Sequence record: MZ422438.1
Reading direction: 5' to 3' (one strand)
Length of the DNA stretch: 64,000 nt
The notes below the pieces were generated by a model, which was given only the letters and a program-made list of their open reading frames with translations, made no database searches and was not told where the DNA came from. Below, one piece after another: positions 4,646 through 53,616 of this stretch. The translations under genes were made by a program, and so were the position numbers. The number at the start of each line of letters is the position of its first letter. The first letter of the stretch is position 1.

Positions 4646-5218
4646 CTATATATTTACAGATTTTATTTTCTTGTCAATCGTTAATGATACTTCAGTCATG
4701 ATAAGCATAATCTTGCTCATAACATATTCCTCAATATGTTCTTCTGAAATGATGGTAGAAACCCTATATTTTAAGTCACTAGACATTCTTTCTACAACTT
4801 CATTAGTACATGATATAACAGATTCTTCAAATTCATCTGTAGTTGTATCGATATCTATATCATCACTAAGTTCACTCTGATCTTCATCAATAGATGTTTC
4901 AGTAGTCGCAGTATTTTCTACATATTCATTTCCTTCATTGTCATACTGAATATTCATACCATTAATTGCAGTAACTTCACTTAATCTAGGAAGTATTCTA
5001 TCAATACTTTCAGCAATTAAATTATTCTTTACTATCCATATGCTAATATCAATAAGAATATCTAATTCCTTTAGTGCTTTTTCACCATCAATATTATTAT
5101 GCATCATTCTATTATTACGGTTAGATTTAATAATCAATCTTCCAATAATTATATGTGTAATAAATATAATTATTAGTATTGAAGGTACTGTAATGTAAAA
5201 TAAATTTGTAGTCATCAA
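4646..5218 (-). CDS. Membrane-anchored acidic hypothetical protein
   Basis: N-terminal hydrophobic helix and acidic body; 190 aa. Confidence 0.6.
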   Translation of the reverse strand: MMTTNLFYITVPSILIIIFITHIIIGRLIIKSNRNNRMMHNNIDGEKALKELDILIDISIWIVKNNLIAESIDRILPRLSEVTAINGMNIQYDNEGNEYVENTATTETSIDEDQSELSDDIDIDTTTDEFEESVISCTNEVVERMSSDLKYRVSTIISEEHIEEYVMSKIMLIMTEVSLTIDKKIKSVNI

Positions 5219-49655: not shown

Positions 49656-50108
49656 TTAAACAATATTACTAAGAATTTTTGGCGTTTTTTCCACAAAATA
49701 AATTTCATCTGAATTGATCTCAATGATATTGGCAATTAGTTTTCTAATAAATCCAACAATATTACTGATATGGATAATTTTATTTTCGTTAAGAATTGAG
49801 AAGTTATCTAGTAATCCATTAACTTTTAGATTGATATATGAATATGATTCTTTATCAATATAAAATTCAATAAGGTCGGAATCGATAATCCTAACATTAA
49901 CTATATTATACAAATTTGCTTTGTTTTTACTATTAATGTCACTAATAAGTTTATCATAATCATCTTTATCCGGAGTATGAAAATAATATGGATTTAAAAG
50001 ATTAATAAAATTGATCTGATATTCTTTTCCTAAAATATTAAAAACTAATCCATTTTTTTCTGAAAATTTAGTTGTAAGAACTTTATCTATAATCACTTTC
50101 TGTTCCAT
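49656..50108 (-). CDS. Hypothetical protein
   Basis: 150-aa ORF. Confidence 0.65.
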   Translation of the reverse strand: MEQKVIIDKVLTTKFSEKNGLVFNILGKEYQINFINLLNPYYFHTPDKDDYDKLISDINSKNKANLYNIVNVRIIDSDLIEFYIDKESYSYINLKVNGLLDNFSILNENKIIHISNIVGFIRKLIANIIEINSDEIYFVEKTPKILSNIV

Positions 50109-50221
50109 TTAAACCACACTCCTATACCATATTATTAGTATTAATAACTTATTGTATTAAGTTATTATAAAATACCCAATACGTTAAATAATAAACGTAT
50201 TGGGAGTATTAATACTAATAA

Positions 50222-50764
50222 TTATTGAATTCTATCTTTAATTACAACTATTGTTTTATGGAAATTACTAACAAATTTAATATTTGTGTCATAATATTTA
50301 TTTCTAATATTATTAGGGATGTGACCAATAATATCACTATAAATAGTATCAATAGTCTTATCGATATTTTCAATATCCGTATATACATAATGAGATAAGT
50401 TATTTACAATAATTTTTCCAATATCAATATATTCATTTTCAAACATATTAGTATATTCTTCAGGACGTAGTAAATTCCTAAATAGATTTTCAATATTATT
50501 AATAATTACATCAATATTTTCATCATTAATAATATCATCGATATCATTATTAATAATAATATCAACAATTTCATCTACATAATAATTAACATTGTCTTTT
50601 TGATTTTCAGTAATACCGATTAATCCATCAACTTGCTCTACTTTACCTGGATTATCATCATAGATATTACTATCCATTGATGTTGAAACGTTATCCATTT
50701 CATTAACGCTTGAATCTTCTTTATTCCTACCACTAAATAACTTATTAAATAATTTCTTAAACAT
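50222..50764 (-). CDS. Acidic hypothetical protein
   Basis: 180 aa; RBS AAAGGAG. Confidence 0.65.
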   Translation of the reverse strand: MFKKLFNKLFSGRNKEDSSVNEMDNVSTSMDSNIYDDNPGKVEQVDGLIGITENQKDNVNYYVDEIVDIIINNDIDDIINDENIDVIINNIENLFRNLLRPEEYTNMFENEYIDIGKIIVNNLSHYVYTDIENIDKTIDTIYSDIIGHIPNNIRNKYYDTNIKFVSNFHKTIVVIKDRIQ

Positions 50765-50881
50765 ACAAATCTCTCCTTTTATACTATATTTTACTATTAT
50801 TATAATATATAAATAAAAAAATGATTAAATTAGTATATCTCCAATCAATTTATATTTTGATTAGAGATATACTAATTATTT

Positions 50882-52778
50882 TTAACTTATATAATCATCG
50901 ATATTTATTTCTTTAAGTTTAATCGACATATCATGAAATGCTTTATATTGATAGGTAATTTTTTGAAGTTATCTCCAAATTTTCCCCCAATCCAAACCGT
51001 ACGTGAGACTTTCATCTCATACGGCTTTCCATCTACTAGGAATCTAAACCTAATCTGTTATGTATCTTTCTTTTTAGTAGACTAAGGACTTTCCCTAATT
51101 TATATTTCTATAAATATTATCGGTATCTTATCCTCGCTTTCAATCCAAATAAAATTTCAGTTATAGTCCAGATTAGACTTTCCGAGAAATAAGTATTATA
51201 TTAATACTTTTGGATCTTCCCATGTTTCTATAGACTTAGGTTTATTATATAACTTAGGACTTTTCTAGACCATATATCTTACTTCTTAACATGATAAGCT
51301 AATAAGGTTATTATCAATGATTAATAACTATTAGAAGATATATTTATACATTACTGTATAGGATTAAGTCATTATAGAAAATTAGTTAAATCTATCCATA
51401 TTATACTACCCAAACCAAGATATCTTATCCTTTTTAATTAAAAGGACAATCTTCTTGACTTCATCCAGCTTCACACATAGTAATTACTTGCTATGCATGT
51501 GGAATATTATTTTCAGGAAAATCTTAGAATCTTTGTTATCTAAGTCCTTGATCAGTCTATAAATTAAATTATATAAAAATATAATTCCTACAATCCCTCA
51601 TATTAAAATAATGATTTCTGTAGAACATGTCACACCATTGATAATCCAGTTAATGCATTCCCAATACCATTCGCAATTAGCCCAACATTCTTAATTCCCA
51701 TTTGATAGTATAGTTCGCCTGCACATTTATTACAGATATGTTCAGACTTACAGTATAATGGACTACGCATTTCAACATTCTTATTAATAAATTTACCTTT
51801 ATTTTCTTCGGTAATTTGCGTTAATTTATCACCGTCTTTTACATAACGAGTAATAAATAAATTAATATTATTATTTGTAAGTGTAATATTTAAATATTTT
51901 TTAGATTTACAATCACTTCCATGATCGCCAAGAATTATTGACTGAAATGCAGTGGCAAGTTTTTTCGCTTCATATCCACCATCTTGAGTACCAATAGCAC
52001 GACTTGCACTAGCACTTGTAATAATTTCTGCATATTGATATAGTTCGTCAGGAGGAATACCATCGTCTAGTGAAGCCATACTAACTCGAACATCATTTGG
52101 GTCCGCATAACTTTTAGTTACACCTCTAGCTACCGCTGTTTGTTTAAAGTTATTATTAAAACTTCCACGGCTTCCACTATCATAAATATCCATATCGGAA
52201 GCATCTTTAAGAATATCATGGGATAATGTTAATAATTCTTTTTCTATTTTAGATACAGTAACAATATCCCCAGAATCAATTGCCTTTTTATGCTTAACAA
52301 TCAGTTCTTCTTTACGAGATTTTACTTGAGGAGGAGTCATCATTAAAGTTGTACTAAGTGATGTTGCAATGAATTTAGTTATACCAAAGCCCAGCCATTG
52401 CATCTTATCAATATAATTACTAAAATCAGCTACAGTAATTTTATCTTCTAATAAGAGAGTACTTAATTGTTTATCTAACTTACTAATAGCCCCACCATCC
52501 ATTGGATGATTAATATATCCAATATATCTTCCTAATTTTGCATCAATAATTAATAGGTTAAAGATATATCGACCTACTGTAGTAGTAATTTTATCTTTAT
52601 TAAAATGAATATTTGATTCTAATTCAAAATAATCACTTGGGTCAAACTTTGCATCTTCATTTTTGGTATATGCAAATAATTCTTGTAATTTTTCCATAGT
52701 GATATCATTCTCTGAAAGATTAAGAATCTCAATCTTTCTAGCATCACTAATCTTTTTACCTTTATATGCTTTTTGCAA
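50882..52778 (-). CDS. Multisubunit RNA polymerase beta' C-terminal subunit; two exons (52778-51636 and 50944-50882)
   Basis: TTVGRYIFN, SRAIGTQDGGYEAKK (bridge helix) and RSPLYC...ICNKCAG (Zn). Splicing gives LTGLSM|KAFHDMSIKLKEINIDDYIS*, which restores the trigger-loop motif. The upstream late promoter suggests the virion RNAP (inference). Confidence 0.9.
50945..51635 (-). mobile_element. ORF-less group II intron (691 nt, IIB-like)
   Basis: 5' GTGTGACATG; D5 AAGCCGTATGAGATGAAAGTCTCACGTACGGTTT (51027-50994); D6 with a bulged A 8 nt from the ...CAATAT 3' end; EBS1 CATTGA in a stem-loop complements exon TCAATG; EBS2 TAATCC complements GGATTA; short DIV. Confidence 0.93.
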
Positions 52779-52815
52779 CTATATTCACATCCTTTATAAA
52801 TTATATCCTTTAATA

Positions 52816-52827
52816 TAAATAAATGTT
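52816..52827 (-). promoter_or_regulatory. AR9-type late promoter AACA-N6-TA for the RNAP subunit gene
   Basis: AACA TTTATT TA, 38 nt upstream of 52778. Confidence 0.55.
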
Positions 52828-52875
52828 CTATTAGATAATAAAATTGTTAGGATCATAGAAAAAAAAAAATATAAC

Positions 52876-53352
52876 CTAGATATCTAGGTTATATTTCTTA
52901 ATATAATCTGACCATAAAGAATTAATACTTTCCTTATCTTGAACGCTTATTATGTCTTTTAATTCAATTTTATTATTTTCTTCAAAGTATATATACGATA
53001 ATATACTGGAGATTGCATCATAACCTTGTTCATCCGTATTAATATAAACGTTATCATCATTACCATAATCCATAAATGTATTATATGATCTTTTTGATTT
53101 TATTTGTACTGGTTGATGATTAATTACTACGTCTGTTCCATTCCTATCTAAATATGCAGAACATTCCATCCAAAATTTAATTTTCTTTTTATTAAATATA
53201 TTCTGAACTTTTCCTAGAATTCCCATTACTGCAATTTCTGCATAGTGACCTTCATTAAGCATTGGTGGCAGTTTATCAATACATTTTCCGTTGAATCCTT
53301 CTTTTCTTGCTTGGTTCTTATAATAGTTCAATTCATTTAAATTAATATACAT
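52876..53352 (-). CDS. Putative PD-(D/E)xK nuclease-fold protein
   Basis: GHYAE...DRNGTDVVI...VQIKS pattern. Confidence 0.45.
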   Translation of the reverse strand: MYINLNELNYYKNQARKEGFNGKCIDKLPPMLNEGHYAEIAVMGILGKVQNIFNKKKIKFWMECSAYLDRNGTDVVINHQPVQIKSKRSYNTFMDYGNDDNVYINTDEQGYDAISSILSYIYFEENNKIELKDIISVQDKESINSLWSDYIKKYNLDI

Positions 53353-53391
53353 CGTAATATTCCCCCACTAATCGTATTATTTATAGTATTA

Positions 53392-53616
53392 TTATTTTTT
53401 CACAATTCTTACATTTGGTTCGATAAATTTAATAAAACAAAATTTCATTGATAGCTTTATAATAGTATATGTAGTTGCAATCATAAATACAATATTAATG
53501 AATATATTATTGTCATAGTTCCACAATACTACGTTTGAAGCAATAATTAATAGAATGGTCAGTATTACCGTTATCATAATTGAGATAAAGATCTTGTTTA
53601 CTATACGATTATTCAT
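53392..53616 (-). CDS. Small membrane protein
   Basis: 74 aa with two TM helices. Confidence 0.55.
   Translation of the reverse strand: MNNRIVNKIFISIMITVILTILLIIASNVVLWNYDNNIFINIVFMIATTYTIIKLSMKFCFIKFIEPNVRIVKK

Follow-up and report, generated by a model that had tools for sequence, protein, structure and literature searches.

A predicted ORF-less group IIB intron in the trigger-loop codons of the virion RNA polymerase Mid-β′ gene of Listeria phage LPJP1

A 64,000-nucleotide stretch of record MZ422438.1 (hereafter the window), part of the 223,580-bp genome of the jumbo phage LPJP1 of Listeria grayi, contains a 691-nt element (51635→50945, minus strand) within a gene for a subunit of the virion RNA polymerase (RNAP). 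This element very probably is a working bacterial-type group IIB intron without an open reading frame (ORF), inserted in the trigger-loop codons of the middle β′ fragment (Mid-β′). It probably descends from an intron that encodes a reverse transcriptase (RT), and it would be served by an RT/maturase in trans. The intron was already published in 2025 and is not a new kind of element. Merk, Jones & Eddy (NAR 2025, Table S1; PMC12350094) list MZ422438 51635→50945 as a 690-nt ORF-less IIB intron of the D1D4-5 type, with an AGC triad and GTGTG...AT ends. The same row gives A0A141HSJ4 as the intron-less homologue and scores the pseudoknot interactions as '+'. Their LPJP1 entry, 'viral RNA pol beta', is the identical element, and their paper mentions neither the trigger-loop position nor the specific likeness of domains 3–4 to the RT-encoding intron. 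Our additions are that the host gene encodes β′, that intron positions 491–578 resemble the RT-encoding intron, and that other phages carry different inserts at or near the same site. The first reports of phage group II introns date from 2025, and they include the present intron among twenty founding examples. It interrupts the trigger loop of a subunit destined for virions; few catalytic elements of multisubunit RNAPs are as strongly conserved.

The element has the anatomy of a group IIB intron

The ends of the element, GUGUG...AU, fit the GUGYG...AY boundaries of group II introns. Two Rfam families were matched above their gathering thresholds (40 bits for RF00029, 34.5 bits for RF02004), and these were the sole such matches in the window. 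RF00029, which covers domains 5 and 6, matched at 50945–51029 (minus strand) with 66.4 bits and an E value of 7e-11, and its match ended exactly at 50945. RF02004 (group-II-D1D4-5) matched at 51404–51540 (minus strand) with 43.2 bits. A permissive Rfam scan returned nothing further near the intron. The longest stop-free stretch inside the element was 37 aa in the sense and 58 aa in the antisense direction, and domain 4 held no RT/maturase ORF. Judged by its sequence, the 691-nt insert is an ORF-less group IIB intron. Its features are listed below, where p is the intron position counted from the first base (window coordinate = 51636 − p); all lie on the minus strand.

50945..51635, minus strand: ORF-less group IIB intron, 691 nt, 27.6% G+C, 5′ GUGUG, 3′ AU
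51647-51642 and 51641-51636, minus strand: intron-binding sites IBS2 (GGATTA) and IBS1 (TCAATG), the last 12 exon bases, from a complementarity scan
51221..51630 (p6-415), minus strand: domain 1 (approximate), closed by CAUGUU/AACAUG in the minimum free energy (MFE) fold
51471-51468, minus strand: AAGC bulge (ε′/λ) in domain 1, a IIB hallmark, from the seven-intron alignment
51361..51366 (p270-275), minus strand: exon-binding site EBS2, TAATCC, single occurrence in the intron
51314..51319 (p317-322), minus strand: exon-binding site EBS1, CATTGA, in the 8-nt loop of hairpin GTTATTA/TAATAAC, single occurrence
51396..51400 (UAUGG) and 51258-51253 (CCUAAG), minus strand: 11-nt GAAA-tetraloop receptor (ζ), a motif conserved across seven introns
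p416-446, minus strand: small domain 2 (tentative), before domain 3
51120..51185 (p451-516), minus strand: domain 3 (approximate, predicted), from the MFE fold and alignment
51083..51115, minus strand: two small hairpins between domains 3 and 4, p521-538 (capped by GAAA) and p539-553
51032..51081 (p555-604), minus strand: domain 4, 50-nt stem-loop TCTACTA...TAGTAGA, no ORF
50994..51027 (p609-642), minus strand: domain 5, 34 nt, with AGC at 51026-51024, GAAA at 51013-51010 and a 2-nt bulge at ~51004-51002
50947..50991, minus strand: domain 6, from the Rfam alignment, the RNAalifold drawing of covariance model R1 and pair counts

EBS1 and EBS2 are perfect Watson-Crick complements (6+6 bp) of TCAATG and GGATTA, with EBS2 positioned 47 nt upstream of EBS1. 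Among 20,000 dinucleotide-preserving shuffles, 1.1% had both hexamers in the domain 1 region, and 0.25% had them correctly ordered and spaced. The domain 5 bulge is CG in the RNAalifold drawing and AC in the other common register, which contains a U·G pair. In domain 6, the eighth-last base of the intron (p684, window 50952) is an A that the RNAalifold consensus leaves unpaired between G·U pairs; this bulged A50952 is the predicted branch point. The motif UAUGG/CCUAAG probably acts as the ζ receptor for the GAAA loop of domain 5. An initial annotation of this stretch had already proposed the GUGUG end, a 34-nt domain 5 with AGC triad, GAAA loop and CG bulge, and a domain 6 bulged A at −8, all of which reappeared in the sequence, Rfam and RNAalifold analyses. 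The EBS positions that it gave, exactly complementary to the last 12 exon bases, were recovered by the scan and the shuffles. Its reading of the insert as a group II intron is supported by the RF00029 score and by covariation in domains 5 and 6, and its domain 4 of about 50 nt without RT/maturase was found as described, with a stem that is weak when folded alone.

If the intron works as these elements suggest, EBS1 and EBS2 would hold the 5′ exon, and the bulged A of domain 6 would attack the 5′ splice site by the standard branching route. The AGC triad of domain 5 would supply the catalytic metals, with its GAAA loop docking on the UAUGG/CCUAAG receptor. A subunit with the trigger-loop residues K/F/H and the conserved tail of 20 residues would require splicing of the pre-mRNA. 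In keeping with a working intron, LPJP1 is viable and forms plaques (PMC8460666).

The structural elements covary across seven phage introns

An alignment of seven introns was made from this one, the other three of LPJP1 and the IIB introns of c-st, PALS_2 and Internexus, with the coordinates of the compared introns taken from Table S1 of Merk et al. (PMC12350094). In domains 5 and 6, 99.5% of the cells were paired over the seven introns and 12 of 27 pairs were changed on both sides. This pairing was matched by none of 500 shuffles, and no slid register came near it. All 14 domain 5 pairs hold in the seven introns, five of them with compensatory changes, and the basal helix of domain 6 covaries. 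The ε-ε′ contact is seen in 7/7 introns, where base 3 of the intron and the final base of the AAG(C/U) bulge change together (G-C in four, A-U in three). The UAUGG...CCUAAG motif was also kept in all seven, with minor variants, and in every intron an EBS1 at a similar place in domain 1 matched that intron's own exon at 6/6 bases. A search for EBS3/δ′ by covariation found no domain 1 column that tracks the first 3′-exon base over the seven introns, in a region where the alignment is poor.

When the whole intron was compared with phages and plasmids by blastn, the matches were limited to domains 5 and 6, and no close relative or donor was found. The most similar domains 5 and 6 (88–89% identical over ~90 nt) come from Clostridium phage c-st, whose IIB intron is ORF-less, and from Bacillus thuringiensis plasmids, whose IIB introns encode an RT (e.g., pMC319, in a VirB4 gene). 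These introns share with the LPJP1 intron the GUGUGAC start and the AAGC/UGAAGUC motifs of domain 1. They differ in their host genes, no DNA similarity was detected beyond domains 5 and 6, and the RT of one B. thuringiensis plasmid intron is only 27% identical to the intron-encoded protein of LPJP1.

The initial annotation had stated that the introns known in AR9 RNAP genes are group I. This is out of date, as group II introns are reported in the virion RNAP β′ genes of AR9 and PBS1 (PMC12350094). The introns in the β′ N-terminal genes of AR9, PBS1, Internexus and MarsHill resemble the present one in being of type IIB and in belonging to the same jumbo phage group. Unlike the present one, they occupy another subunit gene and site and have a CGC triad, and several carry a homing endonuclease rather than lacking an ORF or being linked to an RT. 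Another LPJP1 intron, that of the β C-terminal gene (164479-163854), is 71% identical to the PALS_2 intron (50111-50691). These two introns occupy the same site in orthologous genes, ...GACTAC|AACA and ...GTCTAC|AACA, each with a matching EBS1; they are orthologous or homed, and common to different genera.

The host gene encodes the middle β′ fragment of the virion RNA polymerase

The ORF interrupted by the intron (52778→51630, minus strand) encodes 382 aa and ends with ...GLSMV*. The last codon is read from the intron, and the exons are as follows.

51636..52778, minus strand: exon 1 of the virion-RNAP middle β′ gene, 381 codons, ending ...GLSM
50882..50944, minus strand: exon 2, KAFHDMSIKLKEINIDDYIS and the stop codon, unannotated in GenBank, defined by junction translation and homologue C-termini

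The exon-1 protein matched PHROG 2962 'RNA polymerase beta subunit' (6.9e-76) and NCBIfam TIGR02386 rpoC, i.e., β′ (2.4e-12; model positions 540–898). A profile of 20 homologues aligned with bacterial β′ of the Protein Data Bank (PDB) from residue ~585 to ~947, spanning the bridge-helix region, and this alignment terminated at the bacterial ...IGEPGTQLT(M/L)RTFH. Searched singly, the exon-1 protein had no match in the PDB by phmmer and none in Pfam; its identity as β′ rests on the homologue profile against the PDB, on PHROGs and on NCBIfam. In AR9, the homologous protein bears the annotation of a virion RNAP subunit. Virion RNAPs of this phage group consist of five pieces, the N-, Mid- and C-terminal fragments of β′ and the N- and C-terminal fragments of β, and are required for early transcription (PMC7598289). 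The LPJP1 protein and its homologues, polypeptides of ~400 aa, correspond to the segment of bacterial β′ that begins behind the DPBB domain, includes the bridge helix and reaches the trigger loop. By these sequence relationships, the host protein is the middle β′ fragment and not the full β′. Since the Mid-β′ piece ends naturally inside the trigger-loop region, the protein ends ~15 residues beyond FH. The initial annotation had placed the intron in the β′ trigger loop, which TIGR02386 and the profile alignment with PDB β′ support, with the refinement that the protein is the middle fragment. The host label in Table S1 of Merk et al., 'viral RNA pol beta', should be β′ (rpoC-like).

Excision of the 691 nt restores the trigger-loop motif

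Excising 51635→50945 fuses TCA ATG to AAA GCA TTT CAT at the predicted exon junction GGATTATCAATG|AAAGCATTTCAT. The spliced reading becomes ...GLSM|KAFHDMSIKLKEINIDDYIS, with the joined C-terminus ...GLSMKAFHDMSIKLKEINIDDYIS. Junction translation agrees with the earlier proposal that the ORF stops at LSMV* and that removal of 691 nt restores SMKAFHD. The intron is of phase 0 and separates the Met codon from the Lys codon in LSM|KAFHD. As the profile alignment ends on the trigger-loop motif, this position is between the codons equivalent to Met and Arg of the bacterial ...QLTM|RTFH; on this alignment, the intron splits the trigger loop. The two flanking residues are, we assume, M932 and R933 in E. 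coli numbering.

A large protein database contained 173 homologues, most of 395–410 aa. Their tails run ...(M/L)KAFHD(M/T)S(I/L)K... and stop ~15–20 residues later, and the spliced LPJP1 tail KAFHDMSIKLKEINIDDYIS resembles them, e.g., P0008 KAFHDMSIKLKEVDPENYIS. In the IMG/VR collection, 46 of the 57 loci were uninterrupted through (M/L)K.FH, with some K/R variation. The initial annotation had noted that homologues naturally ending at LSM would speak against the intron; the homologues do not end there. These data also bear on whether the intron is dead, which would leave a pseudogene or a truncated 382-aa product able to function without the KAFHD tail. The truncated ORF alone is annotated in GenBank, which would fit such a product. 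However, no catalytic element of the intron is damaged, exon 2 is in frame and highly similar to homologue tails, and (M/L)K.FH is conserved in those 46 of 57 homologues. In addition, early transcription in phages of this group relies on the virion RNAP (PMC7598289). We consider a dead intron highly improbable.

The D5/D6 covariance model R1, built from the seven introns, found the LPJP1 intron in the window and had no match in 61 homologous loci; an Rfam search of 4+6 homologous loci also returned no group II match. Because both scans of the homologous loci were empty, the intron appears to be confined to LPJP1 within the set of homologues sampled. With no more than 54% identity to the closest homologue, the insertion cannot be dated.

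Bases 50000–53500 of the window match the LPJP1 record with 100% identity at unchanged coordinates. The GenBank coding sequence FPHOBKDP_00077 (51630..52778, minus strand), labeled 'hypothetical protein', extends into the intron. The GenBank annotation is empty from 50764 to 51630, and the intron, the joined coding sequence and exon 2 are all missing there; the original LPJP1 paper does not mention introns (PMC8460666). Two small corrections are due: the GenBank coding sequence should be joined, and β should be changed to β′ in the published table.

Other phages carry unrelated inserts at or near the same site

Several homologous loci are interrupted at or near the trigger-loop codons. The Mid-β′ homologue of IMGVR_UViG_3300031555_004294 (L044) has a ~237-nt insert at ~4858–5095, which lies within the Phe codon of MKQ-F-HD; the LPJP1 site is two codons upstream. 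Pairing is possible between ACAGU of the exon and GCUGU just inside this insert, with U·G at the junction, and G is the last base of the insert. This gives it the look of a small group I intron, and it had no Rfam match at E below 0.1. On a Logan contig (SRR22802518_1136, 6140–6253; L003, protein P0002), which holds the closest homologue (51% identity), the protein stops with ...LALKQ* at the same codon position as in L044, ~100 nt before the contig end. The interrupting sequence, which starts ...CAGT|GAATTGCTGAAC, has no similarity to the LPJP1 intron; it is probably another insert at the trigger-loop site. On ENA contig k141_142368 (6132–7030; L004, protein P0066), Mid-β′ is broken ~9 codons upstream of the LPJP1 site (...NTIGE*), and the frame is back ~900 nt later (...ILNKSMKAFHDSTVHL...). 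The gap contains an antisense STIV_B116-like ORF and had no Rfam match. Downstream of it are several ORFs with CapR/DUF723/DUF4379 domains, a type described by Merk et al. as homing endonucleases (PMC12350094).

A further set of homologues (L057–L059, from ~4283 onward; proteins P0072, P0104, P0117 and others, 261–290 aa) breaks near residue 262, before the bridge-helix GGY motif. Their C-terminal part resumes ~1.5 kb downstream, and the set had no Rfam match. The gene seems to have a second hot spot for insertions here. In the Staphylococcus phages AH12, Machias and LY01, the homologous gene is in two pieces, with ~1480 nt for ~377 codons and hence a ~340-nt insert, and in the sister phages Madawaska, MarsHill, S6 and PALS_2 the gene is uninterrupted.

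The initial annotation had raised the idea of a checkpoint, in which splicing times or limits the production of virion RNAP. The circumstantial points for it are the insertion in an essential catalytic motif and the location of a candidate maturase in the DNA polymerase gene, which is presumably expressed ahead of virion components. Selfish introns, however, normally home into conserved catalytic sequence, and unrelated inserts lie at or near the same spot in other phages. Moreover, 46 of 57 homologues do without an insert, a group II D5/D6 was found in none of the 61 homologous loci, and no switch-like feature was seen in the sequence. The idea gained no supporting evidence, and we regard such a checkpoint as improbable, though less so than a dead intron.

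The intron resembles an RT-encoding intron of the same phage

LPJP1 has four group II introns, one RT-encoding and three ORF-less, and the RT is speculated to act in trans on the three (PMC12350094). The initial annotation had suggested that an RT elsewhere might mobilize the present intron. An RT is indeed encoded in the LPJP1 DNA polymerase intron, and the trans action is the part already proposed in print, as is the general idea of a single maturase serving several ORF-less introns in essential phage genes (PMC12350094).

This DNA polymerase intron (139556→137009) measures 2548 nt and encodes a 598-aa protein (ORF 138933-137137) with RVT_1 and HNH domains according to Pfam; the protein also carries a maturase X domain according to Merk et al. 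(PMC12350094). The two introns have in common the IIB architecture, the D1D4-5 Rfam family, the two extra hairpins and the 5′ segment of domain 4. They differ in length, in the presence of an intron-encoded protein in domain 4 of the larger one, and in the triad, which is CGC there and AGC in the Mid-β′ intron. Locally, p491-578 of the Mid-β′ intron aligns with p535-623 of the DNA polymerase intron with z = 10.4, compared with z ≤ 5.4 for the five other introns. The shared stretch comprises the end of domain 3, the two small hairpins and the 5′ arm of domain 4, up to the RT start codon. The two hairpins between domains 3 and 4 were found only in these two introns, and the closing stems of domain 4 align (TCTACTA/TAGTAGA versus TCACTCA/TGAGTGA).

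Because p491-578 resembles the DNA polymerase intron up to the start of the RT ORF, the simplest reading is that the Mid-β′ intron is most likely an intron of this kind that has lost its ORF. Its splicing would probably be made efficient by the RT/maturase of the DNA polymerase intron acting in trans, as would any mobility. In Ll.LtrB and other well-studied introns, the primary maturase-binding site is at the start of domain 4. Given this site and the shared segment between domains 3 and 4, we infer that the DNA polymerase intron protein may still bind the Mid-β′ intron. Help by a protein is also suggested by the helices, which are weak and A+U-rich. The stricter claim, that the intron kept the maturase-binding part of its RT-encoding sibling and that a complete virion RNAP would depend on the maturase of the DNA polymerase intron, is put forward only tentatively. 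If true, it would mean a small intron hierarchy in one phage, with genes for replication, packaging (the TerL intron) and virion transcription tied to one intron-encoded protein. LPJP1, whose DNA apparently contains uracil, can be modified by recombination (PMC8460666) and so offers a practical phage system for the study of trans-acting maturases.

The Mid-β′ intron could instead be an autonomous ribozyme that self-splices in vivo or with host factors only, its likeness to the RT-encoding intron reflecting common descent. This would agree with the intactness of all catalytic and exon-binding elements, and with the ORF-less IIB introns found in phages without an RT intron (PALS_2, Internexus, c-st). 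Yet few group II introns are efficient in vivo without protein, the A+U-rich helices are weak, and the segment between domains 3 and 4 up to the RT start was specifically retained. An autonomous ribozyme appears rather unlikely, although clearly less so than a checkpoint.

Several observations weigh against a working, trans-assisted intron. EBS3/IBS3, δ-δ′ and γ-γ′ were not located in the intron, which is highly A+U-rich (27.6% G+C). Domains 3 and 4 folded alone were no more stable than shuffles, and the folding z-score of the whole intron was only −2.6. The overall identity of the Mid-β′ and DNA polymerase introns is ~56%, no higher than that between the Mid-β′ intron and other phage introns, and Pfam found no maturase domain in the DNA polymerase intron protein at E below 0.01. 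Maturase binding by the shared segment is assumed from other introns, and splicing in vivo is predicted from the elements described above.

Flanking sequences of the Mid-β′ gene

Just past the stop codon of exon 2 lies one further feature, seen by eye.

50815..50875, minus strand: 19-bp hairpin (TTAGTATATCTCTAATCAA / TTGATTGGAGATATACTAA) followed by a T-run

This hairpin is probably a terminator; it is absent from the listing of a consensus scan. On the other side of the gene, a directly upstream 158-aa ORF (52876-53352, minus strand) was considered as a PD-(D/E)xK nuclease on the basis of a D...Q-x-K motif seen by eye, and this was dropped, as it had no Pfam, PHROGs, NCBIfam or PDB match. That ORF is followed by a long A+U-rich hairpin with a T-run at 52864-52899 (minus strand), which the scan listed. 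Since A+U-rich hairpins with T-runs flank it on both sides, the Mid-β′ gene is probably its own transcription unit.

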